Below are positions 3,168 through 33,854 of a stretch of 64,000 nucleotides of DNA, one piece after another. The number at the start of each line of letters is the position of its first letter. The stretch's first letter is position 1. Source of the stretch: Epithemia pelagica (Eukaryota; Protista; Bacillariophyta); NCBI GenBank assembly GCA_946965045.2, contig OX337228.1:6758001-6822000 (forward strand), in the 5' to 3' direction. The notes beneath the pieces are model-generated. The model ran no database searches. It saw only the letters and a program-made list of their open reading frames with translations, and was not told the origin of the DNA. A program made the translations under genes and the position numbers.

Positions 3168-5296
3168 CTAGTAACATCTTCGCTGCACAGAATTGTTGGG
3201 GATTTTTTTCCTTGGGAATTTTACTGCGATATGCACAACGATGCAGGTCTTACTCGCAGGCCTGGAGCTTTCTTCATCGGTTTGCTCTCCTTCACGACAT
3301 ACGACACATTTAGAGTTTTGATTCCTGAAAATTACCGTAGGGTTCATAGACAATCGAAGAAGATTTGTTCCAAACCGCCTCTTAGCGAGAACCACTTCGT
3401 CCATTGATACACATAAAGAAATTGATCCTCTCCACCCGTGTATCGTTGTAAACCTTTCGAAGCAATGGACTGCGTCAAAGATGCGTGCATACTTGCAAGG
3501 TGAGTCGCATCTTCTCCGATATCCGCCCCGACTTGGGCTGAAATCACCAACGAGAAGTAGGCATTGCTCAAGTTGCTTGCCAGAACACTGCTTATCAAGT
3601 TGGCCGGATGAAGGGTCTCTAAATCATTCAAGGCAATTTCCACAGTATCCGAAGCTCGGAACAAGGGCTCTTGATCTTCCGCCACCACGGAAGGTGTTTC
3701 CTTCCATGTTTTGGACCCAAACTCCCGTGTACGCTCCACTGCTAGACTCGATGCTGGTGGTGGTGATGGACATGGTTCAGGATTTGGAGCATCCATGGTG
3801 GACGACGACAAGGAGGATAAAAGTTCTTGAGCTTGCTGATCATCCGTCAAAGCGCTGCGTGGTTGACCGTACCAATCTATAAAGTCTTCCAAGTCGCATC
3901 CACGATTGGCCGCCTTGAAGTCACTCATGTCCGACAACAATTTATGATCGTTGCATCATGTTGGCCACTTCAACAAGTTCTAGAATATCCCTCTGAGACT
4001 ACATTGGTGAAAGCTTGGCGATGCCAAGATTTGAATGACCGTTCATTGCCGAACTCGAAGAGGTACTTTGTTGCCCCAACCATTGTCGTCGCTGAGCCAT
4101 CAAATCGTCTGTCAACGGCAAAGGGCGCTGCAGATAGGGTGCAAAGACTTGATGTCCGTTGCTTCGGATGCTTTGACCTTCGACGGGACAACGGGCCCCC
4201 ATGCGGGTGGTCATCCACGTCGGGACAGGCCCATTCGCCTCTGTTTGGCTGGGTTGGTCCGCGTCATAGTACTGTGTCATTTGCCCGGTATGAAAGGTCG
4301 CCACACTTGGGTCATCCGCAAACGTTCTGCGGGTTTTTCTCGTCGCCTGACTCGCCACGCTTCGAGATTCCCAATTCCCAATACCGAGATGCCTGGCTTG
4401 CAACACTTTGCGCGTCATGGTTGCTTCCGGGTGGAAATGCTTTGAATGTCTTTGTTCCTGCCCCCGGAGGCAAGCTCGTATCAAACCAATCTTCCGTCAA
4501 AGGGCTGTCCGGTTGCAAATGGTTTCGTATCGAAGGCCAATACAGATGAATCGTCCACTTCTGACTCAAACGGACCACCAGCATTCCCATCCCCGGCTTC
4601 CTCCGACGGTAAATTGTAGGTATCCTGAGGTGTGGGATGGTCACGGTACGAAGGAGAACATCGCCTCGCTTGGCTCCACTTTTGTTGTTGGAGGAATCGG
4701 CAGTGGGGACGGCCGGACAGTCCATTCGACCGGCCCCCGATCCACCGCGACAGGGCAACAGGAAGCGGGCAAAGTAGCCATCGCGATAGGCTGTCACTGC
4801 CATGACACAGACACACGAAGAGAGCCAAATTAAAACACACGACATGAGTTCCGCATCAATGTCCAAGAGGCTCTACCAATCCTTCAAGGAGAGTGTTGTC
4901 GATGATGACTGAAGTCCCGAGGCAACACCCACGAGAAACGGCAAGCCATCCTTGAACACCAAACACGACTCTGCCGCACCTGCCTCCAACACGACGGAAA
5001 TTGCAAAAAAAAAGGGCGATGCAGATTTGAAAACTCTGAAAGTAGATTTTCCCAGGAACGAGCGAGAATGAGAAACGAGCCTCCGGATTGTCGTTGTCGC
5101 AAGCCTGAAAGGGGTATTTTTTGGTAGCCGTGGGATCAAAACAGGGCAACATTTTGTGGCGCAATCGTTTGGGCAATCGTCGCAGCAAGGGTTTTTCGTG
5201 AGGATTAAAGTAGGGTTCGTGTTCTTCATCCTTATTGTCATAGTCTTCTTCTTCTTCTTCTTCGTTTTGTTGTTGTTGTTGTTGCGTCGTCGTCAT
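3168..5296 (-). pseudogene. Rab3 GTPase-activating protein catalytic subunit-like pseudogene
   Basis: Rab3GAP1 signatures APYLQRPLPLTDDL and LLSDMSDFKAANRGCDLEDFIDWY lie in different frames. They are separated by a TAG (3999-4001) and a TGA (3956-3958), with no AG acceptor between that TGA and the LLSDM codons. Further apparent frame changes occur near 4860, 4480 and 3400. The 5' limit is uncertain. Confidence 0.75.
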
Positions 5297-5575
5297 CGAC
5301 TTTCTCTTGTTCTTGTTCTTGTCGTCGTCGTCTTGGTTGTGGTTTCGTTGCAGAGGAGCCGTGTCCTCTTGGCTCCGCTGTCCTCGAGGTACGCCCGACG
5401 GTTGATTGTTGTGTAGTTGGGCTGTGCTGCTGCCCTCGACCCTCAACAATGCCCCGAATAAACCGACCCCGCTGCCTCGCACCTCTATGGTCAGATCGCC
5501 AAACAACACGAAACGCCAACAACACGCAACAATCCAACACGCACAAAAACAAATACGAACGAAATACGATTGACC

Positions 5576-6496
5576 ATGATGATGTGTGATTGTGATTACT
5601 GTTACGAAAAGATGATCAGCTCCGAATGGGCTCAGTTAGTTGCTCCTTTTGTGGTTCTCATACTGTGTTACGGTGCCGCTGATGTCCTCGATGAGGCGAA
5701 ACTAATAGTCCAACACCTGCTTCGGGTCATTTTCAACAAGAAAAGTCGTACTACAAGTAGCGAACACGCGGAGCTTCGACACGAACACGCGGAGCTTCGA
5801 CAGCTTCGACACGACAAAGCTCAGCTTCAACAACAGCTGGCCATTGCCGAAGCTAAGCAACAAAAAGAAATTGCAGCGAAGGATGGAGCCTACAAGAAGC
5901 TTCGTCGCGAGAATGCGGCGCTTCGAGTGAGGAAAGTGCGGTCTGGCCGAAAGCTTCGACGCGAAAATGCTCAGCTTCAACAACAGCTTGCTGTTGCCGA
6001 AGCAAAGCTTGCTGCGAAGCAACGCGAGACTCGTCGCCACAAGGATGGAGAGATCGAGATTCGCGATCGCGAGGAGGAGGTCGACGTCGACACTGTTGCT
6101 GTTCTGCCTTGCGAGTTCGACGCTGACTTGGACTTCCCTCCTCTCGCACTCGCAGACGATCTCGAGGACGACGAGGAGACCCCTCTAGTTCCAGTCGACC
6201 GTCCTGAGCCTGAACCCGCGCTCATCCCCGACAACGACGACGAGAACACTTTGGGGCACGACTCACCCCCTCGAAATTCCACCCCTCCTTCCCCCACCCC
6301 CACCCCCACTGAAAAAGATACCTCGCCTCAGATGGATGAGAATGCCCCCCAGAGCGTGATCGAGAGTTCCGCCGGCCCCGAGAACACCCCACATTTGGGC
6401 AGAATCCTTACTGTTGCCTACTCCAAAAAGGCACACGGAATGGTGCACGTTCGACGATCCGCTCGTCTTTTGTCAGCGGGTATGGGTAAAAAATAG
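5576..6496 (+). CDS. Orphan protein: N-terminal hydrophobic segment, coiled coil, acidic/Pro-rich linker, C-terminal RRSARL motif
   Basis: Intact ~306-codon ORF. WAQLVAPFVVLILCYGAA is hydrophobic. Internal DNA duplications are visible (gaacacgcggagcttcgac x2; gctcagcttcaacaacagct x2). It ends HVRRSARLLSAGMGKK and has an AC-rich leader at 5510-5570. Confidence 0.6.
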   Translation: MMMCDCDYCYEKMISSEWAQLVAPFVVLILCYGAADVLDEAKLIVQHLLRVIFNKKSRTTSSEHAELRHEHAELRQLRHDKAQLQQQLAIAEAKQQKEIAAKDGAYKKLRRENAALRVRKVRSGRKLRRENAQLQQQLAVAEAKLAAKQRETRRHKDGEIEIRDREEEVDVDTVAVLPCEFDADLDFPPLALADDLEDDEETPLVPVDRPEPEPALIPDNDDENTLGHDSPPRNSTPPSPTPTPTEKDTSPQMDENAPQSVIESSAGPENTPHLGRILTVAYSKKAHGMVHVRRSARLLSAGMGKK

Positions 6497-7626: not shown

Positions 7627-9062
7627 GCTGCCGAAATGAGAGTCTATTGTGCCTACAGTTTTCCAGCCGTCGTGCTCTTGTTGGGGGCCGAAAATTGGAT
7701 GGGCGCCCTGTTGAATCCGAGTTATGCCGAAGAAGATGATGACGAGGAAGAAGTGGATGAAAATGGCAACCCCATTGAGGATGGTGGAGTCGTTCCCAAG
7801 ACAAGGACGGTCGCCTCGGATCCACCCCTTCCCGTCGAGCGGTGTTTGGCCAGTTCGCTCCATACCGTGGCTCACATTTTGGGACCCGAAATTGCCGTGG
7901 CGGATATCTTGCCCGTGTTTACGGATTATTTTTGCGAGATTCCGACGACACCGTTCGACTCAATATTATTGGAGGATTTCCCACCTTTTTGGGCATTTTG
8001 CCTACGACGCAGCATCGGACTGATTTGGTTTTGGCCTGGAGCCGTTTCATGCACGGCGAAGATTGTTTGGGAGCCAAGAAACGATCGGCCACCAATCCGT
8101 TGGTCTTGAATTGGCGCCAACGCGATTTCCTGGCCCGGAGTTTGCCGCTTGCCACCCGAATTGATTCATGCCATGTTTGGCCCATTTGTCAACAATTGAT
8201 CTTTGATTCTGTCAGTCTCATCCGAGATGATGATGTCCTGTGAACCATTCCCATTATGTTCAAAGTGGACACACCTGATACCATTGCGACCAAGTGGAAT
8301 GGGAGAGCCAACGCGGGCGGCAGCGCGAAGAAAAAGTCTTCTCTCATGTCCTCCTCCAACTTCTCTTCCAAGACAGCCGTTTTGGAAATTGTCACGTGGT
8401 TTTAGTACTGAAACTAGGGGCTCCAACAAACAACAATGGCAGCAACAACACCAGCAACACAAGCAATAGTAGCAGTGCTCAGGCACTTCGTAAATCCGTC
8501 TCATCAGTGAGTACGGGTGGTTCAAATGTGGCCATCAATTGTTTTGTCGCTACATTGGATTGTCCTTGCGGTTAAACGAAGAAATTCGAGCCAGTGGCAA
8601 AAAGGATCTAGCGGCAGCCTTGGGGGGGAACCCTTTGCCAGTGTCTTTTGCGGAAACTCCACATAATCGATTGGTGACCTCCACGATAGTACTCGTAGTA
8701 AGGGAAACTTGATGAGGGAGCATCTCTTCGATCAAGCGTGTTGGTCATCTGTTGGTTTGGTCACAGGAAAAGCTCGCCGACTCGTTTCTTCAGGAAACGT
8801 GGCCCAGCAAGAAGGCCTGTTTTTGACATTCCTCCCGTAGTCGTGACAACATAAGTGCTTTGATTTGGCCTCTCAGTCTCCGGAATTGATGATGAGCAAC
8901 GTTCCTCAGGTCCAGGATCTTCTGCTGATTCTACCACTAGATATCGAACATAATGATAAGGAAGTACATTGCTGGAACGTAAATGTTTCCTCTGCGGGGG
9001 AAAAGACCGTATACGCGAGCAGCGACATCGCCCTCATCATGTCGATTCGTCTCATCGTCTAA
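7627..9062 (+). pseudogene. PP4R1-like (protein phosphatase 4 regulatory subunit 1) HEAT-repeat pseudogene, 5'-truncated
   Basis: YCAYSFPAVVLLLGAENW, CLASSLHTVAHILG, LRDSDDTVRLNII and NWRQRDFLA match the C-terminal HEAT repeats of PP4R1. Lesions: frameshift at the T-run 7929-7933, TGA at 8241-8243 and TAG at 8403-8405. The 3' limit is uncertain. Confidence 0.8.
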
Positions 9063-9530
9063 GTACTTGGTTGGATCTTTTTGTTCGCTCAGGGTGTGTA
9101 TCTTGCATGCCGTCGAATTGCTCCGATGTACTTGATGAGTCACTGCTGGAGTATGTGTTGTCATCCCATTCATCGTAGATACTCTTGAACTTTATTGAAT
9201 ACATTTCTTGGGAGATGAGAGCGGGTACTTCAGCTACGTTCGGAATCATGTCTTGTTGGTTCCGCAACAGTCGTTCGATGTCTCTTCTAGATTATTTTTT
9301 GTGAGAACGGGTCCTCCTTTACGTTTATGAGTCTTGGGTCTTCCGTCTTGTGTAGCATGTTGATCCCGTGATCGGCAATAATATTTGACGTCCTTGCTCG
9401 CGAGTCATGTTGAGAATCGAGCGACTGCAAACTACGTCTACTACACGTATATGTATGTAGGGCTAGTGAATGTCCAATTTCAATTTGAGATGATATTTCT
9501 ATGGCGTCGTTCATCGAACTCATTGAACGT

Positions 9531-10750
9531 TCAAGTGCTCTTGAGCAACTTGGCCTCTCGATTCTTCCGTGCCGTTGCTTCTTCGTCTGTCTCCATTCGT
9601 CCACTACTGTATCCACCCTGAGTTCGGTCCAACAAATCCTCAGTATCGTAGGCTCTCGCCGCCTTTTCTTTTCGATTCAAGGCCCTCTTGGCTTCCATCT
9701 CCTTGCGCAACCAATATTCTGCAATGCTCAACATTTTTGCGGGATGCTGTTCAGCTTTCAATTTTTGATACACATCGAGGTCCTCCATTCGACCTTGCCA
9801 GCCACAACTTCCCTTATCGGTGAGGAAAAACAAATGAGAAGCCCAATCATCCAATCCATCTGATAAAGCATTATAAGCGACCAAGACAAGATTGAGTTTC
9901 GTTCGTAAAAGCCAATGATCATGACAGTGTGTGCTTACCAAAAATGTGAGTGGCATAAATGATTGTCGCACGGCGTACATCAGACTCTTTGACCAACCAG
10001 CGCAAGAGATCTTGTCGGACGCAAACGTCCAAGCTCGTAGTGATTTCATCCAAGAGCAGAATCTTGAATGGACGAATCAGACCCAGCAAGATCTGAACTC
10101 GCCGACGCTGACCATCCGAAAGTTGGTGCATCCGCCAGTCCAAATCAATTCCGAGCATATCCACTAATTCATCACGACGTTCGGGATACGACGCTTGCAA
10201 TCGTTCCATCATGTTCCGAACCGCAATGTCCGCCATAAGAGGAACCGCGTTGCCCACAAAGGACACATTGCGCATACCCCAGTCACAATCCAAGCAAGCT
10301 CTGTGAAAATTCAGTCGAGTGTCGTGAAAGGCATTCAAGCCAAGTACTCGGACCGACTGGTCCATTCCATTTTGTACATTGTTGCTGCTGGTCAAGTGAC
10401 GTCCCGCTAGAACTCGAAGCAAGGTGGATTTGCCTTATCAAAACAAAGCACAAACACCATTTCAAAACAGAATCACCAAAGTCAGAATGCCTGTCGATCG
10501 AGACGTCATAACAGCTGGTCAATATCCTCTGGTATCATTTACCTGATCCATTCGCACCAATCAGTAAGCATCGCGATCCTGTCGTCAGTTCCAGGTTCAG
10601 CTTTTGAAGCACCATATTGTTGTTGTACTCGCTGACAATGGATGTTCCACTGTCACTGCTCTTGTAACAAAAGGTCAGATTTTTCACCTCAATGGCCTTT
10701 TCGCCATACTCGGGAAGTGGTGGTAGGGGCTTGGGGGTAACTCCATTCAT
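9531..10750 (-). CDS. Soluble ABC ATPase, CAF16/ABCI-like (3 exons: 10750-10543, 10433-9939, 9859-9531)
   Basis: Walker A GANGSGKST is rebuilt across intron 10434-10542. Also present: signature LSDGQRRRV, Walker B ILLLDE, and YATHIFDGL rebuilt across intron 9860-9938. No TM domain. Confidence 0.9.
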
Positions 10751-11169
10751 GATTGTCTAGTGGATTCTTCTTCTCTCGTGCAGTTCTATTGGAATGGCTT
10801 GCGTCGCAAACTCGTCTGGTTTGTACAGCAAAAATTAATGATCATGGCATAATGACACACAAGAATCGGATGATGGAAAGCGAACAACACAAACAAGGTA
10901 GATGAGATGGATGTCTGCGTTTGTGGCTGCGTCTTTGCAAAATGACGTGTTCTCGTTGGTTCAAAGTTGGGCACTGCTGATGGGTTCTTGATTGCGTTGT
11001 CCCCCGTGCGCACATGCTCAGTCGCGGAGCGAACCAAACTGCCGTGGCACCCAGCATCGTTCCAGCTACGGCTCCATTCGTATGCGCGACCGCCCCATAA
11101 CTCCGGTTTTGACGCGCTCACAATGGTGGGAGACATTGCGCTGTCCATCCGAACGCAACGACGACGATT

Positions 11170-11988
11170 ATGATGATGATGATACAGAACCTCCGCACTC
11201 GACATGCCATTGTACGGTCAAGACTCTGCTTCGCTTCGCCATGTCCTGTTCTTCTTTTGTCGATAACTTTGATATGTCTATTGTTTCTTTCACCAGCTCT
11301 GGCGGATCCAAACTATGAGTATGTACGTGAGGTTTTAGAAGAAGAGGCCGAGTTTCACGATCAGGACAATTCGTACTACCATGAGGATGCCAAGCCTGCA
11401 CAAGACGAGACCAGTGAGTCTTCGAGGCGTGCTCAAGAACGCGATGCAGAGTTTGAAGCCAAGGTCCAACACTTGAGTCGTCAAGAGCAAAAGAAGGCCC
11501 GCCAAAAGAAAAAGCAAGACGCTCGGTTGGTGTCTTGTTTATTAAGAGCATCGGAAAATCGTGATTACTACGCAGTCTTGGGACTCAGTCGCAAACAAGC
11601 CTTGAGTCAGTCGATTCCCCAGTGGCTCAGACGACTTGTTCCCAGTGAAAAACTGCGGTTCTTTGACCTGAGCGCCGCGGATATTCGCAAGGCCTATCGC
11701 AGCATGGCCACCCGTGTACATCCAGATAAGAATCACGATGGTCGAGCGGACCGTGCATTCATGGCATTGGAGGACGCCTACAGTATTCTGTCGGATAAAA
11801 ATCAACGTGAAGAGTACGATGAAACCTGGAGCTTTCAGGCCTGGGATGGATGGAATGATCGACAAACGCGGGTGGTTCAAACCACACAAGCGACTCTCAT
11901 GACAGTCGTACGAGTTGTTACCATGGTCAAGAAAGTTGTAGGACCATTTGCCGTTCCTGTTGGAATTCTCGCGGCTGTTTTCCTTTGA
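11170..11988 (+). CDS. DnaJ/Hsp40 J-domain protein with N-terminal signal or anchor and C-terminal TM segment
   Basis: DYYAVLG...IRKAYRSMATRVHPDKN...AFMALEDAYSILSD...REEYD, with hydrophobic N- and C-termini. Confidence 0.85.
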   Translation: MMMMIQNLRTRHAIVRSRLCFASPCPVLLLSITLICLLFLSPALADPNYEYVREVLEEEAEFHDQDNSYYHEDAKPAQDETSESSRRAQERDAEFEAKVQHLSRQEQKKARQKKKQDARLVSCLLRASENRDYYAVLGLSRKQALSQSIPQWLRRLVPSEKLRFFDLSAADIRKAYRSMATRVHPDKNHDGRADRAFMALEDAYSILSDKNQREEYDETWSFQAWDGWNDRQTRVVQTTQATLMTVVRVVTMVKKVVGPFAVPVGILAAVFL

Positions 11989-12320
11989 AGTCGTCGGCGT
12001 TCCATACTGTTGGAGTCGGTTCAGAATGGTTCTGTATCCTTCAACGTCGGTGAAGCTGTATGCGACTCAAACATTCAAGTGAAGCCGTAGAAGTAGCCGC
12101 CTACCTAGTTTTATGTGCATCAGAGCACTGTGTATCGAAGCTAAAGGGCGGTTGAATTTCTTTCAAGACAACAGATGATGACAACAACGGCAACGTCGCT
12201 CATAGTACCTATTGTAAGCCATTTATTCATTCATGGCAAGAGAAACGTACGTAATATATCCATCAGGATGTTACTATTGAAAATCTTGACTATTCGTGAC
12301 ACAGACTCACGTATTTCTGC

Positions 12321-25640: not shown

Positions 25641-27059
25641 CTACTTGGCCCGTGGCTTTTTCTCGTCTTCGAGTTTTTGGTACTGTTGCTTGGCTAACGA
25701 ATAGACTAGTACCCCAGCCAGTCCAATCGCCGATCCAATGGCTGCTTGTAGGGTGATTTCGTTCCGAAAGACCATGACCGAGGCCACGAGGATAAAGACT
25801 CGTTTCATGGTATTGCCCACGGCCAAGGTGACGGGATGGACCGAGCCCAAGGCCAAGTACATGACTTCATTGTTCAAATAGTGAAAGAGACCGGACAAGA
25901 GGACACTAAGAATGAGTTGGTCCGGTGCTTGTTGTTCCAGAGCCTCGGACCACGTCGATCGAATCGACGACCCTTCCCCCATAATCGTCAAGGGAATGGA
26001 AATGATAAAGGCGGCAATCGTGACGAGGGCAAAGACATTGGGGGGTGTCAGGTTGGTTCCAATCGGTGGTTGACCTTCTGGCGTGGTCATGGCGACTTTG
26101 GACAAGACGGCCCGGAGGGCAAAGGCGAGGTTACTGCCCATGGCCATGCCAAAGGCAAGCCAGGAAAAACTCCGTTCCTTCAAGCAGGCATATCCGACGC
26201 CGCCCACGACGGGCAACAAACTGGCATAGACCGGGGCCGGCATCCATTTGCCAAAACACAGGGCGGACACGACGGCACTAAAAAAGGGTTCCATGGCCTT
26301 GACAATGTGGGTAAAGGAGACCGGGCCGGCATTCAAACTCAGGACGGTACACAATTGACCCGTCGCATGCCACACACCCACGTTGCGGACGGCGGTTTTG
26401 CCACTGGCTTCCAAGGTTGGCACCGACCGTAACCCGAGTGTCCACAAGGCCATGGCGTACAAGGCGCCAATCCCCAATTGGAGGGAACCAACTGTCATGG
26501 GGGCATCCCAGACATTGAGCACGCGCTTGTTGACGACTAAAAAAAGAATCGAGCAGGACGAAAACAACAACAGAACCAAAGGAAAATAATAAAGAAGAAG
26601 AGTGTTTTGAGTGAGTCTGTAATTAAAACAATCCATAATCCACCAACTTGCAATGTTCCTTTCCCTCGTGCAGTACGTACTGTTGTAGACAATGTTGAGG
26701 GCATACCACAGGGCAAAATAAAAGCCAATCAAAGCTCGACGCAACAGATCCTCCACCAGGGGGCTACGGACCGCACCTCCCCGTGGTGGAAGCGAATCAG
26801 GAGTCGTATTCTTCATTGCAGAGGAGGACGAGGAGTTGGGTCCATCCTCCTCCTGGTTGTGAGGCGGCGGTCGCCGCCGAAGACCCGTGGTGGATGGAGT
26901 CGAAATGGTGACGGGGCGTTTCCGGAATTCGGCTGCCTCCGCCGAATCGGTATTAGTGCTGATAACAAGAAGGAAGAAGAACCACAAGGATACGATTTGC
27001 CACCAAGACCACCGTTTGTTTGTCTTTGTTCCAACCACACGGTGGGTGGACGGGTCCAT
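25641..27059 (-). CDS. Triose-phosphate/phosphate translocator family (exons 27059-26681, 26536-25641)
   Basis: WYALNIVYN/IVNK, VSFTHIVKAMEPFFSA, VGNTMKRVFILVAS, with an N-terminal signal-like segment. Confidence 0.92.
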   Translation of the reverse strand: MDPSTHRVVGTKTNKRWSWWQIVSLWFFFLLVISTNTDSAEAAEFRKRPVTISTPSTTGLRRRPPPHNQEEDGPNSSSSSAMKNTTPDSLPPRGGAVRSPLVEDLLRRALIGFYFALWYALNIVYNSTYCTRERNIASWWIMDCFNYRLTQNTLLLYYFPLVLLLFSSCSILFLVVNKRVLNVWDAPMTVGSLQLGIGALYAMALWTLGLRSVPTLEASGKTAVRNVGVWHATGQLCTVLSLNAGPVSFTHIVKAMEPFFSAVVSALCFGKWMPAPVYASLLPVVGGVGYACLKERSFSWLAFGMAMGSNLAFALRAVLSKVAMTTPEGQPPIGTNLTPPNVFALVTIAAFIISIPLTIMGEGSSIRSTWSEALEQQAPDQLILSVLLSGLFHYLNNEVMYLALGSVHPVTLAVGNTMKRVFILVASVMVFRNEITLQAAIGSAIGLAGVLVYSLAKQQYQKLEDEKKPRAK

Positions 27060-27492
27060 GGTCGGGTGTCGTTTGACAAAAAGAACAAATCTTGATGGGA
27101 GGACGAGACATGAAGATGACACACGTCACACAGACAGACGGACGGACGAACTGGAGCTGACAGGAGTCCCGGATACTTTTGTAACGGGACTCCATTTATA
27201 CTACTTTTGGTCGCCCATAAAATGAATGCCAGGGCTGCATTTGCGTCCTCGGTATCTTCTTCGCACCTCCCTCGTTTCATCTTCTCTCGACAGCTTGTCA
27301 AGACGCGTACGAGAAACTTGTCAACTGTCAACATCTCCTTATCATCTCTCTCGTCGTCGGTAATCGCTTCGCTTCTCTTTCTCGCTTCGATTGCTTCGTT
27401 GCTTGTTCTTTGGTCGTTCCCCTCGCCATCGCGTGATTGTTGCTGGCTTGACTTGTTTCATTCATTCATTCTACAAACGAGAGTGTCATACC

Positions 27493-29227
27493 ATGTTTTA
27501 TCGATCCACCTCCGTCGCCACCCGTTCCTGGCAAAGACTGTCGCACGCGTCCAGCGCAACAACCCGAATCCATCTTCCCAGCGCTGCTGCGATTCGATCC
27601 TATTCCTTGTCGGCCCCCCTTTGTTCGGATGACAGCAACAACAACAAGGGCAACAGCAACACTGTCGTGACGACCAAAAAGACTTTGGTGACTCGCGAAG
27701 AAGGCGTCCATCAAACCATGAAGGTATCGAAATCATGGCGGAACAAACCCTTGTTTCGTCGTCAAGGCGATGTCCGCTTCAAAACCGGAGCCGAAGCGGC
27801 CCAATTGTTGGTGGATGAAGCCACACGACGAGATGCCCCCCTGACGCAATTTATTGATTCCGTCTCGAGTGCCATGCATTGCTTGTCGCCCGTCTTTGAT
27901 CGGAATCCCAAATATGCCTTTATTGCCAAAACACTCATGGAACCGGAACGCTATTTGCAATTTCGAGTCGCCTGGATTGACGATATGGGTGTCGTCCGTA
28001 TGAATCGAGGCTTTCGGGTCCAATACAGTTCCTCCTTGGGATGCTTCGAAGGGGGCTTGCATTTTGGATCCCACGTGAGTAATGCCGTCATCAAGTCTCT
28101 GGCCTTTGATCAAGTCTTTTCCAATGCCTTGACCGGCTTTGACATGGGAGCCGCCGTGGGTGGGTCCGACTTTAATCCCCTCGACAAGAGCGAGGGCGAA
28201 TTGCAACGATTTTGTCAATCCTTCATGACCGAATTGGCCAAGTACATTGGTCCCGATATTGACAATCCCTGGATGGGCATGGGTGTCGGACAAGAAGAAA
28301 TGGGATACCTCTTTGGACAATTCAAACGCATCAACTCCAAAAATAGTATCCCCGGACGATACTTTCTCAGTGGCAATGTCGAAGTAAGTGCAACCGAATC
28401 CAAAATGATGTTGGAATGTCACGAAACCAAGCACTACGGAACATGTCTCACATACACCCTGTCCATTGTTGCGCGCGCACTCCAATTCTGCGATACAACT
28501 ACTACAACACCAAACAAATATTAATAAATAATGATAGAGTCCTGGATATGGAGTGGTTCATTTTGCCCATGAAATGTTGAAAGACAAGGGAGATTCCTTG
28601 GAAGGAAAGCGGTGTTTGATTGTCGGCAGTGGCAAGGTGGCTCGTTCCGTGGCTGACAAACTCTTGTCCTATGGAGCTTTACCCTTGACCTTTTCCGATG
28701 CTTCGGGTCATGTCTACGAACCGGATGGGATTAAAGAAGGACAATTGCGAACCATTAACAAAATCAAGGAAGAACGTGGGGCCCTGCTGGGACGGTACAT
28801 TATTTCTTCCACCACGGCGCAATTCAATGATCCCGACAATCTCTTTGACATTCCCTGCGATCTCGTTTTCCCCTGTGGTGCCATGTCGGCCATTGATACC
28901 GCCCAAGTCGAACAATTGGCCAACAATGGCTGTACGGGCATAATAGAAGGCGCCCAAAAGACGGTCACGGCGCCCGCCCGCAAGACACTCAAGAAACGAG
29001 GCATGTTGTACGGACCGCACAATGTCACCTTGACCGGAACGGCCATTGCGCATCACATTGGAGCCGGCATGACAGATGAACTCTTGGTGGACCATGTCGC
29101 CCGGATTTATCGAGAAGTCAAGGGAACGGCGTCGGAATTCAATGTCCGAGGAGACTTGTATGCCGGAGGCAACATTCAAGGCTTTTTGCGGGTCGCCAAC
29201 AAAATGGTGGGGCATGGAGCCGTGTAA
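27493..29227 (+). CDS. Glutamate dehydrogenase-like protein with degenerate active site, mitochondrial-type presequence (exons 27493-28383, 28538-29227)
   Basis: Colinear with NADP-GDH: EPERYLQFRVAWIDD...NRGFRVQYSS, GGSDFNP, KSEGELQRFCQSFMTEL, GSGKVA, CDLVFPC, IIEGA, GGNIQGF. The intron is 28384-28537. Confidence 0.9.
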
Positions 29228-29933: not shown

Positions 29934-32900
29934 TCAATTCGAAGGATACTTGATATCTTCTTCCGTCAGACTTTCGGCGTATTTCATCCAGGGATGCTCG
30001 AGGGCCTCCGAAGCGGAAGGTCTCTTGTCTGGATCGATCGTCAGAAGCTTTTGAATGAAATCTGTAAAAACTGCTTGTTGCTTCTCATCTTTCGAGAGTT
30101 TGGCATTGGAATTGTACCTTCTCATTAAGGACGACGAAAACCCTAACCTGGACGATAGACAGGTCACCTTTGGTTGGAAAAGATCCATGTATTTCTTCCT
30201 TCGGTCACTGGAGGTGTCATCGTCATCGTCGCTTGTCTCACTCTGCGAATCTTCATGTTCGTGCTCATCGGAAGCTAGTTTTTCGAATAACAAGCCGCAT
30301 TTCGTGAAAAACCGACCACTCTGTCTTCCTTGAGCAATCATATGAGACGGGAATGTGCCACAAATGGCTTCAATGCGGCTCAACATGGAAACAATGGAAT
30401 CGTTCTGGAATGTGACTTCACCTGTGTACATCTCGGCTACAACACAGCCCAAGGACCACACGTCGATTCGTCCGTCGTAGGGCAAACCCAGAATAACTTC
30501 GGGTGCCCGATATGATCTGGACTGAATGTAGGATGATTGACGGTCCGTCAAAAAGCAAGAACTTCCAAAGTCAATCACTTTTACTTGTGCTCGACTGTAA
30601 CTGCTCAAGAGAATATTCTCTGGCTTGACATCCGAATGCACCAGACCCAACTTATGTACAAAGTCAAGAGCAATCAGAATCTGTCTGGTCAAATAGCACA
30701 AACGGGGTATTGTAAAGTAAGGTTCTTCGTTGCTGTCAATAATGAACTTTCCGAATTCGAAAAGATTCTGTCGAAGCAGTTCCGTCACAATGATCAGGTG
30801 CTCCCTGTGATAAAAGAATGTCTTCATCTCGACAATGTTCATCTCCTGGCACATGCCTGTCTGACGCAAAAGCTCCAATATCTTGATTTCATCCAGCGAT
30901 TGGTCGAAAAAGTCTTTGGTATTCTTGATCACTTTCAGACAAACTTCATCATGACCATCTGGTCCATCTCCATCCGAGCTCAAATCCACGCATCGATAGG
31001 CTGTACTAAACGCAGCACTACCTAGTTCTCCTTCCACTAAGTATTGTCCGGCAACAACGTTTCCTGCCTCCAATACCAGATCTTTGGTCGGCTCAAAGCC
31101 CGTCACGTGCGACTTGTATATAATGGGCAGGTGAAAGTATTCCAAGTCGCCCATCTCGCCACGGCCGGTGGATTTGACACCCGGGAAACAAGCCAGTGGT
31201 TGTTCTTTGGGGTAAATACGTGCTCGTGTCGCAATTTCATCTTCCAGCCGGCTTTTCTTGGCGGCTTCTTTACTAGCCAATTCTTGCTTATCCAGCAGAT
31301 CTTCGGCTTCTTTCAAATCTCGTTCAAAGGCTTCATCGTTCTCATCGTCATCGTGTGCGCGCTTTTTCGCAGTGGCGATCATGCGCTCAAAGGCATATTC
31401 CACGGCGGCTAGCTGTAAGGTCGTTAATCGGATAATACGATAGCCCGCTTCATCGGGATTGCTCTCATCCCAGTCTGGTCGTTTGTCCACAAGCTTGAGA
31501 GATTGCACCATGTTCGAGTCCAACAAATGGGCGCACAAGGTTTTCATGAGTTCGTCCGTCTCCTCGTCGACTTCATGGGAGGAGTATTTGTCCCCCGTTT
31601 CGTCGGCCAACGCTCCCGTTACCATGGAAACAGCGGCCGACAAGGAATCCAACAGGGACGGGGAGGTATAGGAATCTCGTTGTTGTTCCATATCGCCTTC
31701 GAGCACAACTCCCGTCGTGCCCCCGGCGTTTTTACTGAGGGGGCCCAGAACTCCATCGAGTTCCGAGTGGTTGTTTTGATTTTCATCGTCATTTTCAATA
31801 TCACAAAATGCGTCGTCATCCTCGTCGTCGTCGTCGTCAATATCGGCATCCTCGTCTTCATCTTCTGCTTCTTCTTCTACTACGTCGTCTTGCACGTCTG
31901 ACCCTCGGATATCCGCCGAGCCACTTTCCTTGTCATCATAGTCGTCGTCGTCGTCCTGGTCCTCGTTTCGTTGTTTATCGGGGTCGGGGCTGAGAACACT
32001 TCGCACGCGTCGATCAATGACATCGTCTTTTTTGGACCGTACGGCCCGTTCTTCTTGCAAACGCACCATTTTGTCCAAGTCGTCTTCGGGTGGCGTTTCG
32101 TCCCGAGGCGGCGGCTGAGCCGCCCCCACGAGGGAGGTGTCAATGGTCAAGTTGGTTTTGGGGCGCGTAGTACTACTGGTGGTGCCTACAGCCGGTACGG
32201 CGGCTTCGGTGGGGGGTTGGAGCAGGCGGGCATTGTGATTGGGCGACGACGACCCCAAGGTGGACGTGGAAGGGGCACCGAGCAAATCGGTCATGGCACG
32301 GACCAAGGCATTTTCGCCATTCGTCGTACTGTCCAATACTTCAACGACGGCCTGTGGTCGAGTCTCCTCGGGACTGGCCGTCTTTTTTTCTTCTCCTCGA
32401 CTGGTCGTAGTAGTCGTCGTAGTAGGAGGAGGAGGATGCGTGGTGGGCCAGTGCGGAGCCGTGGTGGGTGGTGGTGATTGGGAGTCGTCGTGTGGGGTCC
32501 GCGTGGGTTCGGCCAAGGCGTGCAAGGATGCTGGTTCTCCTCCTCCTCCTCCCCGCGATCCTCTCCCTTGACTGTGGGCCCGTTCCAAAATGGCCAACAA
32601 GACTCGTTCGACCCCGCGATGCACCTCTTGCTCGGTGGTATTCGTAGTCGTATTATGACTACTCAGTGTCGTGGAAGGATTCATGGACGAGACTTGGGAG
32701 GGTGCCGCGGAGGTGGACAACAAGGTGGGCAGTCGATCGTCGTCGTCGGGTTCCGGTTCCTTGGTTCGAAAGGTGGTGGAGGAGGGGACCGATCGTGACG
32801 TGAGGGCTCCTCCTCCTTCCGCGTGGTCGTCGTCCAGGGTCGTGGTTGTGGTGGTGGGGTGCCCCAAGGACGCCAGGGCCGCCTCGGGTTGTGAGGCGTG

Positions 32901-33854
32901 GTGCAGCCATGGTTGTGGTCCCACGACAACATCGCTGTGGCTACTGCTGCTAGGGACGGCTGGTGCTTCGAGCGGCGTACTATACTTGTCTTCTTGTTTG
33001 AGTTCGGCCAGTCGGCTGGCATAGCGGGCCATGCGTTCTTGCCGTTGTTTGCGGCGGGCTTCAATTTCCGCTTGATAGGCTTCGCCCAAGGCCACGGCCG
33101 ACGGAGTCGTGGCAGTTGCCAAAGCCTCCTCGCTGGAGGATGGATCCATGGCGGATTCCGCCGCCAACAGGACCGTGGCCTTAGCAGTGTCTTCCTGTGA
33201 TGGTTCGTCCCGCAATTGCAAAATCCGATCGGCTTCGGGCGGTGTGCGAGACCGAGGATTCATTCTCGTCCACGACGACGACGAGGATGCTGCTGCTGCT
33301 TTGGACGAGGACTGGGGCGAACTGGGAGGATGGAGCAACATGCCATTGGGAGACGAAAAGGCGGCAGTCGTCGTCGTGTCACCGGCAGCCCGCGGCGTAC
33401 GATGTTTGCGCAAGAGATCGAGGGCTTCTTTAATGGCATCTTCGTAGGGATTGGAGACTTCGGAAGAAGCCGTGGAATGGTGGTGGTGATTGTGGGTAGT
33501 AGTAGTAGAATTGTGAGCATGATGCGTATAGTGCGTGGGAGTGGTCCCATCTCTCCGCGATTCGGCTTCCACGGCGGCTGGATGGCTGTTGCTGCCTCCG
33601 AGAATTTCGAGGCGTTGTTGTTCGTGTTCTTGCAAACTTTTTAAAATCTCGACCGAATCTCGATTCGTCGTGTCGTGTTGGGGTGGTGGTTGCTGCTGCT
33701 GTGGTTGGGGAGACAGAGTCGCTGTCGGTGGTGGTTGCACAAAGTCTTGGGCATTGTAAAAGCTAAAGCGCGTTTGGGTGTGATGCGAGCTCACCGAGGC
33801 ACTGTCCTTGTTGGTGGCGACACCATCACTGGCCGCCGATGCCGTGTCGTTCAT
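29934..33854 (-). CDS. DYRK-family kinase, DYRKP-like, with ~900-aa disordered N-terminus
   Basis: TGFEPTKD, LGSAAFSTA, KVIKNTKDFFDQSLDEIK, HSDVKPEN, YIQSRSYRAPEVILGLPY; single 1306-aa ORF. Confidence 0.92.
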   Translation of the reverse strand: MNDTASAASDGVATNKDSASVSSHHTQTRFSFYNAQDFVQPPPTATLSPQPQQQQPPPQHDTTNRDSVEILKSLQEHEQQRLEILGGSNSHPAAVEAESRRDGTTPTHYTHHAHNSTTTTHNHHHHSTASSEVSNPYEDAIKEALDLLRKHRTPRAAGDTTTTAAFSSPNGMLLHPPSSPQSSSKAAAASSSSSWTRMNPRSRTPPEADRILQLRDEPSQEDTAKATVLLAAESAMDPSSSEEALATATTPSAVALGEAYQAEIEARRKQRQERMARYASRLAELKQEDKYSTPLEAPAVPSSSSHSDVVVGPQPWLHHASQPEAALASLGHPTTTTTTLDDDHAEGGGALTSRSVPSSTTFRTKEPEPDDDDRLPTLLSTSAAPSQVSSMNPSTTLSSHNTTTNTTEQEVHRGVERVLLAILERAHSQGRGSRGGGGGEPASLHALAEPTRTPHDDSQSPPPTTAPHWPTTHPPPPTTTTTTTSRGEEKKTASPEETRPQAVVEVLDSTTNGENALVRAMTDLLGAPSTSTLGSSSPNHNARLLQPPTEAAVPAVGTTSSTTRPKTNLTIDTSLVGAAQPPPRDETPPEDDLDKMVRLQEERAVRSKKDDVIDRRVRSVLSPDPDKQRNEDQDDDDDYDDKESGSADIRGSDVQDDVVEEEAEDEDEDADIDDDDDEDDDAFCDIENDDENQNNHSELDGVLGPLSKNAGGTTGVVLEGDMEQQRDSYTSPSLLDSLSAAVSMVTGALADETGDKYSSHEVDEETDELMKTLCAHLLDSNMVQSLKLVDKRPDWDESNPDEAGYRIIRLTTLQLAAVEYAFERMIATAKKRAHDDDENDEAFERDLKEAEDLLDKQELASKEAAKKSRLEDEIATRARIYPKEQPLACFPGVKSTGRGEMGDLEYFHLPIIYKSHVTGFEPTKDLVLEAGNVVAGQYLVEGELGSAAFSTAYRCVDLSSDGDGPDGHDEVCLKVIKNTKDFFDQSLDEIKILELLRQTGMCQEMNIVEMKTFFYHREHLIIVTELLRQNLFEFGKFIIDSNEEPYFTIPRLCYLTRQILIALDFVHKLGLVHSDVKPENILLSSYSRAQVKVIDFGSSCFLTDRQSSYIQSRSYRAPEVILGLPYDGRIDVWSLGCVVAEMYTGEVTFQNDSIVSMLSRIEAICGTFPSHMIAQGRQSGRFFTKCGLLFEKLASDEHEHEDSQSETSDDDDDTSSDRRKKYMDLFQPKVTCLSSRLGFSSSLMRRYNSNAKLSKDEKQQAVFTDFIQKLLTIDPDKRPSASEALEHPWMKYAESLTEEDIKYPSN

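Follow-up and report, generated by a model that had tools for sequence, protein, structure and literature searches.

A Conserved Glutamate Dehydrogenase-like Protein of Diatoms That Appears to Be a Pseudoenzyme

Introduction

What is the product of a glutamate dehydrogenase (GDH)-like gene whose catalytic positions are all replaced: the remnant of an enzyme, an enzyme with another substrate, or a protein that acts without catalysis? The question is raised by a two-exon gene of the diatom Epithemia pelagica, located in a stretch of 64,000 nucleotides of contig OX337228.1 (GenBank assembly GCA_946965045.2, positions 6,758,001 to 6,822,000 of the forward strand), hereafter the window, whose own coordinates are used throughout. 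A preliminary description of this sequence had seen in it an intact NADP-GDH homolog devoid of catalytic residues, and had proposed either a nucleotide-sensing regulatory subunit of mitochondrial nitrogen metabolism or a dehydrogenase with a new substrate. We show here that the gene belongs to a diatom clade that has lost the same residues and is under strong purifying selection. With moderate confidence, we propose that it encodes a conserved pseudoenzyme, a catalytically dead protein with the fold of hexameric NADP-GDHs, probably mitochondrial, that would act by binding.

Family Membership and Predicted Fold

The window protein is a member of the Glu/Leu/Phe/Val dehydrogenase superfamily and, within it, of the NADP-GDH family. 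Pfam recognizes ELFV_dehydrog_N (PF02812) on exon 1, at residues 151-278 (E-value 2.7e-36; 124.6 bits for a cutoff of 25.3), and ELFV_dehydrog (PF00208) on exon 2 (6.3e-38; 131.3 bits for a cutoff of 23.4), and the nearest solved structures by sequence, as found with HMMER, are the Plasmodium and Babesia NADP-GDHs (E-values of about 1e-52 for exon 1 and 4e-37 for exon 2). The query for full-length searches was the Epithemia ortholog P0002, or else the two exons of the window protein were searched separately. Under the NCBIfam equivalog for NADP-GDH (NF006929; cutoff 536 bits), P0002 fails at 357 bits and the window exons score 214 and 142; the canonical enzyme of the bolidophyte Triparma strigata (P0444) passes at 630 bits.

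The fold was predicted with AlphaFold2 on P0002, which is ~88% identical to the window protein overall and 95% over domain I, by using an alignment of 148 sequences. The model has a mean predicted local distance difference test score (pLDDT) of 87.7 and a predicted template modeling (TM) score of 0.84, with residues 1-66 disordered; a first run on 20 close homologs, with a pLDDT of 44, was discarded and superseded by this one. Foldseek matched the model to the Corynebacterium glutamicum NADP-GDH (5gud_A; TM score 0.91, root-mean-square deviation 2.1 Å) and to other hexameric GDHs, including the Thermus heterohexamer 3aoe. As modeled, the protein has the two-domain GDH fold.

Loss of the Active Site

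Residues of the active site are numbered as in Clostridium symbiosum GDH, a numbering set by the alignment range of 1bgv_A and the single two-residue gap in the consensus comparison. From what is known of the C. symbiosum and bovine enzymes, we take K89 to bind the gamma-carboxylate of glutamate, K113 to bind its alpha-carboxylate, and K125 and D165 to be catalytic. A Protein Data Bank title ("1k89, K89L mutant") agrees with this role of K89.

The four motifs that carry these residues align without gaps to the solved Plasmodium and Babesia NADP-GDHs (HMMER), and all four residues are replaced (table 1). The alignment to solved GDHs confirmed every substitution listed in the preliminary description (GCFEGG, GLHF, FSNA, GAAVGG, and PWMGMG), and the codon positions given there (28048, 28120, 28156, and 28276) fall exactly on E186, S210, V222, and G262. 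One detail needs amending: in the change from PAGDIG to PWMGMG, it is a glycine that replaces D165, the methionines standing for G164 and I166.

Further losses emerged when the consensus of 15 clade members was set against that of 88 canonical sequences. The substrate loop LTGK..GGSLxRPEATGYG is five residues shorter than the canonical consensus, as its earlier description as a shortened TGK...GGS...EATGYG loop had implied, and its arginine is gone. CATQNE has become CGAMxx in the clade consensus (CGAMSA in the window gene) and EGANMP has become EGGxSx (EGAQKT in the window gene, with Gln in place of Asn), and the segment PGKAANAGGVAxSGLEMxQN, which carries S380, has been rewritten with an 11-residue deletion. 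The whole glutamate-binding set, namely K89, K113, the loop Arg, the Asn of EGANMP, and S380, is therefore substituted or deleted in the window protein. On the cofactor side, GSGKVA and SDASG are present, and CATQNE and EGANMP are gone.

A Diatom Clade under Strong Purifying Selection

The best 120 matches of a word-indexed homology search are 71-100% identical to the window protein across domain I. Residue counts were made on the alignment of these 120 sequences, many of them metagenomic, with the window protein (n = 121). K113, K125, and D165 are absent from all 121: the K113 column holds S in 114 and never K; the K125 column holds V (108), A (11), S (1), or T (1) and never K; and the D165 column holds G throughout. 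The R93 column is equally invariant, with H in all 121 sequences (H190 in the window protein), and the K89 column is variable (E in 74, K in 9, C in 9, Q in 8, H in 7, and others). Named members span raphid pennate and centric diatoms, with Epithemia clementina (95% identity over domain I), two homeologs of Fistulifera solaris, Entomoneis sp. CCMP2396, and Chaetoceros affinis. Domain I is the best-conserved part of the protein, at 71-95% identity among diatoms. Many clade members contain a CDLCFPC sequence, which we considered as a CxxCxxC metal site; this was rejected, the middle cysteine being V in the window gene and A in Epithemia.

The position of the intron is common to the window gene, E. 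clementina, and F. solaris. Gene order is also kept in E. clementina, where the GDH-like gene lies between a TPT transporter gene and a protein kinase gene, both on the minus strand (flanks at 4225-5672 and 8192-12046 of locus L001). In the window, the gene is flanked upstream by a putative TPT/EamA-type transporter (25641-27122, minus strand) and downstream by a 1306-amino acid open reading frame (ORF; 29934-33854, minus strand). A protein kinase gene also lies downstream in both homeologous loci of Fistulifera.

Between the window gene and its Epithemia ortholog, the nonsynonymous divergence (dN) is 0.079 in the core and 0.33 in the presequence. Synonymous sites are saturated in this pair (proportion of differences pS 0.77), so that the numeric ratio of nonsynonymous to synonymous divergence (dN/dS, omega) was dropped for it and taken from the Fistulifera homeologs instead. 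Their dS is 0.254 and their dN 0.0102, which gives an omega of 0.040 overall, 0.025 in the mature part, and 0.21 in the presequence. Purifying selection on the clade is thus strong. The preliminary description had allowed for substitutions private to this genome with a dN/dS near 1; they are clade-wide, common to the 121 sequences, and the conserved clade under purifying selection that it had envisaged is what we observed.

Transcription and Splicing

A 692-nucleotide contig of public run X3 joins position 28383 directly to 28538 with 0 mismatches, and the depth of X3 within the intron is zero. X3 is recorded without a library type, and its spliced, highly covered contig is most simply explained as cDNA. 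Run X4, from the same organism and study, holds the unspliced form. Together with the uninterrupted frame, the conserved clade, and the selection described above, the spliced contig bears out the earlier view of an intact, spliced, and maintained gene. The RNA runs X1 and X2 yielded only short pieces from relatives, 90-97% identical. A deep pile in X1 at 27632-27662 was rejected as evidence of expression because it falls on an uninformative AAC-repeat coding stretch; this AAC-rich stretch (27626-27665, encoding DDSNNNKGNSN in the presequence) draws many short unrelated metatranscriptome contigs in X1, a low-complexity artifact.

Both X3 and X4 also hold a second form of the gene, ~5% divergent (27474-27693, 28282-28333, and 29207-29218). 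Its presequence lacks 9 nucleotides at ~27642 and carries small insertions at 27582/27584. This form probably represents the second haplotype of a diploid organism, or else a very recent paralog.

Displacement of Constraint from the Substrate and Cofactor Sites

To locate the constraint, per-site entropies were rank-normalized separately for the diatom clade and the 88 canonical sequences, and compared in 9-residue windows. The two profiles are correlated at only 0.19. The ten largest relative losses of conservation lie on or beside functional elements, and no active-site or cofactor motif is spared: the substrate loop, PAGDIGVG, the S380 segment, GPYKGG, FEQxFKN, CATQNE, the GSGNVA loop, and GGSDF. 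The largest gains (in P0002 numbering) are at 349-392 (SGHVYEPDG ... GALLGRYIISSTTAQFN), 441-449, 488-496, 96-104, and 130-138, mostly in the NAD domain. Moreover, the positions of the former pocket equivalent to K89, Q110, and A163 stand at the 82nd-92nd percentile of variability within domain I, in a protein that is otherwise very conserved.

The preliminary description had regarded the Rossmann motif GSGKVA as intact. This holds for the window gene and fails for the clade as a whole, in which the loop has lost relative conservation and reads GSDKV in 7 of the 44 sequences that include the C-domain, among them both Fistulifera homeologs, with their omega of 0.04. The EGAN position varies as well (Q, H, Y, V, or S). 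Because conservation has left the active-site and cofactor motifs, the pocket columns are variable, and the GSDKV form occurs in a constrained lineage, the sequences argue that the old glutamate and nicotinamide sites are no longer selected features, and that at least one lineage can do without canonical dinucleotide binding. The proposed nucleotide-sensing role is weakened accordingly, CATQNE and EGANMP being both gone and variable.

A Presequence-like Extension and an Invariant N-Terminal Motif

In each of the 18 full-length sequences examined from the diatom clade, among them that of the window gene, the first 26-60 residues abound in R, S, T, and A, contain little D or E, and form no hydrophobic core (highest Kyte-Doolittle mean over 12 residues below 1.5). 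The region evolves fast, with the dN of 0.33 given above against 0.08 in the core, and is disordered in the ortholog model. These features probably indicate a mitochondrial presequence rather than the signal peptide-led plastid route of diatoms, and the mitochondrial-type presequence noticed earlier in the window gene thus has the same appearance across the clade.

Downstream of this extension, and upstream of the usual GDH start, lies a further motif (table 1). It is invariant in diatoms as WRNKPLFRRQGDVRF, positions 77-91 of the ortholog do not vary in alignment A1, and the confidence of the AlphaFold2 model climbs through it, with block means of 74, 88, and 97. In the wider clade described below it takes the form [RK]x[KR]PLFxRxGxxxF, and a recognizable version is found in one canonical eukaryotic GDH, P0542, whose N-terminus resembles a mitochondrial presequence. 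Because the motif occurs in this canonical enzyme and in the wider clade, it seems to be older than the loss of catalysis.

The canonical NADP-GDH of T. strigata (P0444), as well as P0445, has a hydrophobic, signal peptide-like start followed by SSGF or AHAF. This start resembles the plastid-targeting signature of heterokonts, and the canonical Triparma enzyme may be plastidial rather than mitochondrial.

Table 1. Coordinates of the GDH-like Gene and of the Elements Discussed in the Text
Feature	Position in window	Strand	Detail or basis
GDH-like gene, 2 exons	27493-29227	+	Product 526 aa
Exon 1, 297 codons: presequence, conserved N-terminal motif, GDH domain I	27493..28383	+	ATG at 27493; ORF and splice-site reading
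N-terminal extension, ~60 residues, presequence-like	27493..27672	+	R/S/T/A-rich, 2 acidic residues, maximum 12-residue Kyte-Doolittle mean 0.70
N-terminal motif WRNKPLFRRQGDVRFK, residues 82-97	27736..27783	+	Upstream of usual GDH start; entropy near zero in diatom clade
E186, equivalent of K89	28048..28050	+	Alignment to solved GDHs; GPYKGGLRF to GCFEGGLHF
S210, equivalent of K113	28120..28122	+	Alignment to solved GDHs; FKNS to FSNA
V222, equivalent of K125	28156..28158	+	Alignment to solved GDHs; MGGGKGGSDF to MGAAVGGSDF (GGGKGG to GAAVGG)
W260-M261-G262-M263, in place of A163-G164-D165-I166	28270..28281	+	VPAGDIGVG to NPWMGMGVG; D165 to G262
Intron, phase 0, 154 nt, GTAAGT...ATAG (GT..AG)	28384..28537	+	Skipped exactly by X3 contig
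Exon 2, 229 codons and TAA: GDH domain II (NAD(P)-binding fold) and C-terminal helices	28538..29227	+	Pfam, Protein Data Bank GDH alignment
Glycine-rich loop GSGKVA (canonical GSGNVA)	28625..28642	+	Sequence reading; unbroken in window gene

A Wider Family with Intermediate Active Sites

When 1.84 billion representatives were searched exhaustively by HMMER with the Epithemia protein as query, 4341 matched at E <1e-3. We classed the best 150 and further homologs by motif and inferred phylogenies with FastTree (LG+gamma); the tree is unrooted except by midpoint, and most of its tips are without taxon labels. The diatom clade (support 0.98-0.99) is nested in a larger group (support 1.0) whose members have all lost K125 and D165. 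One of them is P0150, whose gene lies on Tara Oceans scaffolds of an intron-poor picoeukaryote. The sister of that group consists of oomycete-type sequences, such as Peronosclerospora sorghi P0338 (K89M, K113R, K125H, and D165G), in which CAIQND and EGANxP survive. A more distant group contains the labyrinthulomycete Hondaea fermentalgiana (P0326); here K113 is kept, K125 is R, H, or K, and D165 is often kept; three of its members (P0329, P0331, and P0332) have K113, K125, and D165 intact and only K89 changed, to R. One more small group completes a clade of 35 tips (support 0.998), whose named members are all stramenopiles (labyrinthulomycete, oomycete, and diatom) and whose neighbor, under midpoint rooting, is formed by canonical eukaryotic NADP-GDHs, including that of T. 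strigata.

K89 is lost alike in P0326, P0338, and P0150, with K113, K125, D165, and the cofactor residues kept in differing subsets, and the diatom clade is the most stripped of these remodeled clades. Intermediate states of the active site, including H or R in the K89 column next to unchanged K113 and D165, were observed among the relatives (P0326, P0329/P0331/P0332, P0338, and P0333). As read from these sequences, the graded series may include enzymes of altered specificity, and it suggests a scenario in which glutamate specificity was lost early and all catalytic residues were lost afterwards in the diatom branch, the order of events being deduced from the tree.

Another group of modified GDH-like proteins occurs in land plants. 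The P0160 cluster (209 members; P0308-P0321), of ~637 amino acids and annotated "NADP-specific glutamate dehydrogenase(-like)" in Malus, Cucumis, Glycine, Prunus, Quercus, and others, has GGAAGG for GGGKGG, with the catalytic Lys replaced by Ala, R for K89, and E for D165, and it keeps K113, CATQNE, and EG(S/A)NMP. It forms a clade separate from the diatom proteins and may correspond to an uncharacterized fourth GDH-like gene of Arabidopsis.

Discussion

The protein combines the three features by which a pseudoenzyme is recognized, an enzyme fold, the disappearance of the essential catalytic residues, and purifying selection (omega 0.04); its inactivity is deduced from the sequence. In the interpretation that we propose, the gene is transcribed and spliced, and its product is probably imported into the mitochondrion. 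The residues known to bind glutamate or 2-oxoglutarate and to carry out the chemistry have been replaced or deleted, and bulky tryptophan and methionine side chains would fill the former substrate pocket, which would make the GDH reaction impossible by the known mechanism. Selection now acts on domain I, which is the oligomer core of canonical GDHs, on the invariant basic N-terminal motif, and on the stretches of new constraint, most of them in the NAD domain. We consider binding the most probable mode of action, with the protein as an oligomeric scaffold or a regulatory subunit for some partner, whether or not this partner is a catalytic GDH. The data show the fold, the disappearance of the catalytic residues, the conservation, the purifying selection, and the splicing; mitochondrial location, oligomerization, and action by protein binding are the parts of this proposal that we infer.

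Several points weigh against this interpretation. The mitochondrial location is read from the composition of the N-terminus, and the fold model is that of the ortholog P0002 and not of the window protein. Most clade members keep GxGxxA and the end of the SDxSG strand, so that binding of an adenine nucleotide may still be possible, and GAAVGG, M261, G262, and H190 are highly conserved across the clade; these positions of the former pocket could mark a new ligand site, and not only packing.

This last point is the core of an alternative to which we give a low probability, that of a neofunctionalized NAD(P)H oxidoreductase or ligand sensor whose remodeled, more hydrophobic pocket (W260, M261, M263, V222, A220, A221, and H190) would receive a substrate other than glutamate. 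The near invariance of GAAVGG, M261, G262, and H190 and the GxGxxA and SDxSG retained by most members are in its favor, as are P0329, P0331, and P0332 and the CAIQND and EGANxP of oomycetes, which suggest that altered-specificity enzymes existed in the lineage. However, K125 and D165 are generally conserved across Glu, Leu, Phe, and Val dehydrogenases, and this general base and this acid are both gone here. Because they are lost along with the nicotinamide-side motifs, a new oxidoreductase activity appears unlikely; the variable EGAN position and pocket columns, and the constrained Fistulifera homeologs with Asp as the second Rossmann glycine, point in the same direction and weaken the earlier proposal of a dehydrogenase acting on a new substrate. 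That the locus is a pseudogene in decay or an artifact of annotation has only the missing catalytic residues in its favor, and we regard its probability as negligible: the frame is intact and correctly spliced, more than 100 orthologs have the same substitutions with an omega of 0.025-0.04, and synteny with Epithemia is kept. The shared substitutions, the splicing, and the selection refute it.

A somewhat less improbable alternative, although still an unlikely one, is a special case of the pseudoenzyme interpretation, in which the protein would be a noncatalytic regulatory subunit of heterohexamers with a catalytic NADP-GDH and would tune mitochondrial glutamate/2-oxoglutarate metabolism. This was the principal proposal of the preliminary description. 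It finds its model in the documented Thermus heterohexamer, one of the structural matches of the protein, and is consistent with domain I, the oligomerization domain, being the best-conserved part. Diatom relatives (Triparma P0444 and Heterosigma) carry canonical NADP-GDHs of the neighboring eukaryotic lineage, and canonical P0542 has both the N-terminal motif and a presequence-like N-terminus. On the other hand, the N-terminus of the canonical Triparma enzyme is not of the mitochondrial type, identity to canonical GDHs is only ~35-38%, and the strongest new constraint (349-392, 441-449, and 488-496) is mostly in the NAD domain, outside the canonical domain-I core. A homology search for a canonical mitochondrial partner in diatoms, with P0335 as query, returned canonical GDHs of Triparma and Heterosigma and no named diatom.

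The pseudoenzyme interpretation can also be extended to the whole family, a scenario that we offer tentatively, as possible but rather doubtful. A widespread eukaryotic family would have arisen from a mitochondrial NADP-GDH and lost glutamate specificity early, the diatom branch then losing all catalysis and becoming a purely structural or regulatory mitochondrial protein, with a new, conserved interaction surface on the former NAD domain and the invariant basic N-terminal motif. Its partner would be other than GDH, and the protein would be, for example, a subunit or sensor of another mitochondrial complex.

With the hexameric NADP-GDHs (C. glutamicum 5gud, Plasmodium falciparum 3r3j/2bma, Babesia microti 9yis, and C. 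symbiosum 1bgv), it shares the two-domain fold (TM scores up to 0.91), the domain order, and many structural motifs, at 30-35% identity in structural alignments and ~35-38% to canonical homologs over the full length. It differs from them by the lack of K89, K113, K125, D165, the GGSxxR Arg, the EGANMP Asn, and the S380 segment, by its failure under the equivalog, and by the addition of the presequence and the invariant N-terminal motif. GdhA of Thermus thermophilus (GdhA4-GdhB2 heterohexamer, 3aoe) is likewise a noncatalytic GDH paralog retained by selection. The precedent invoked in the preliminary description, an inactive GDH paralog serving as regulatory subunit, is thus real and offers a plausible model. 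Nevertheless, GdhA is bacterial and belongs to a different GDH subfamily (~20% identity, TM score 0.78), and hetero-oligomerization and a leucine site have been demonstrated for it, whereas we know the diatom protein by its sequence. The AdoMetDC prozyme and the DHS paralog of trypanosomatids are also dead paralogs under purifying selection that partner an enzyme; their folds and pathways are unrelated, and the analogy is conceptual only.

Named public records of the diatom clade are labeled "glutamate dehydrogenase" (most of them "glutamate dehydrogenase (NADP+)") or hypothetical protein. Judged by the residues lost, the NADP-GDH labels are almost certainly wrong. A review of model diatoms reports two isoforms of EC 1.4.1.4 (PMC3901274), and the literature on diatom metabolism counts GDH isoforms with no mention of a dead one (PMC3901274). 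It names J13951 (NADP-GDH) and J45239 (NAD-GDH2) of Phaeodactylum tricornutum, among which no ortholog of the clade was identified, and full-text searches, which did not extend to subscription journals, yielded no account of a dead GDH from diatoms or other stramenopiles.

Models of nitrogen metabolism in diatoms, which are major primary producers of the sea, draw heavily on gene annotation and transcriptomics. If this protein is catalytically dead, corrections would be needed in the number of GDH isoforms, in flux models, and in how "GDH" expression is interpreted during nitrogen stress. The clade appears to be a cleanly defined, ancient, and strongly constrained pseudoenzyme, and its labyrinthulomycete, oomycete, and metagenomic relatives appear to record a stepwise loss of catalysis, which would allow direct tests of how a central metabolic enzyme evolves into a pseudoenzyme.

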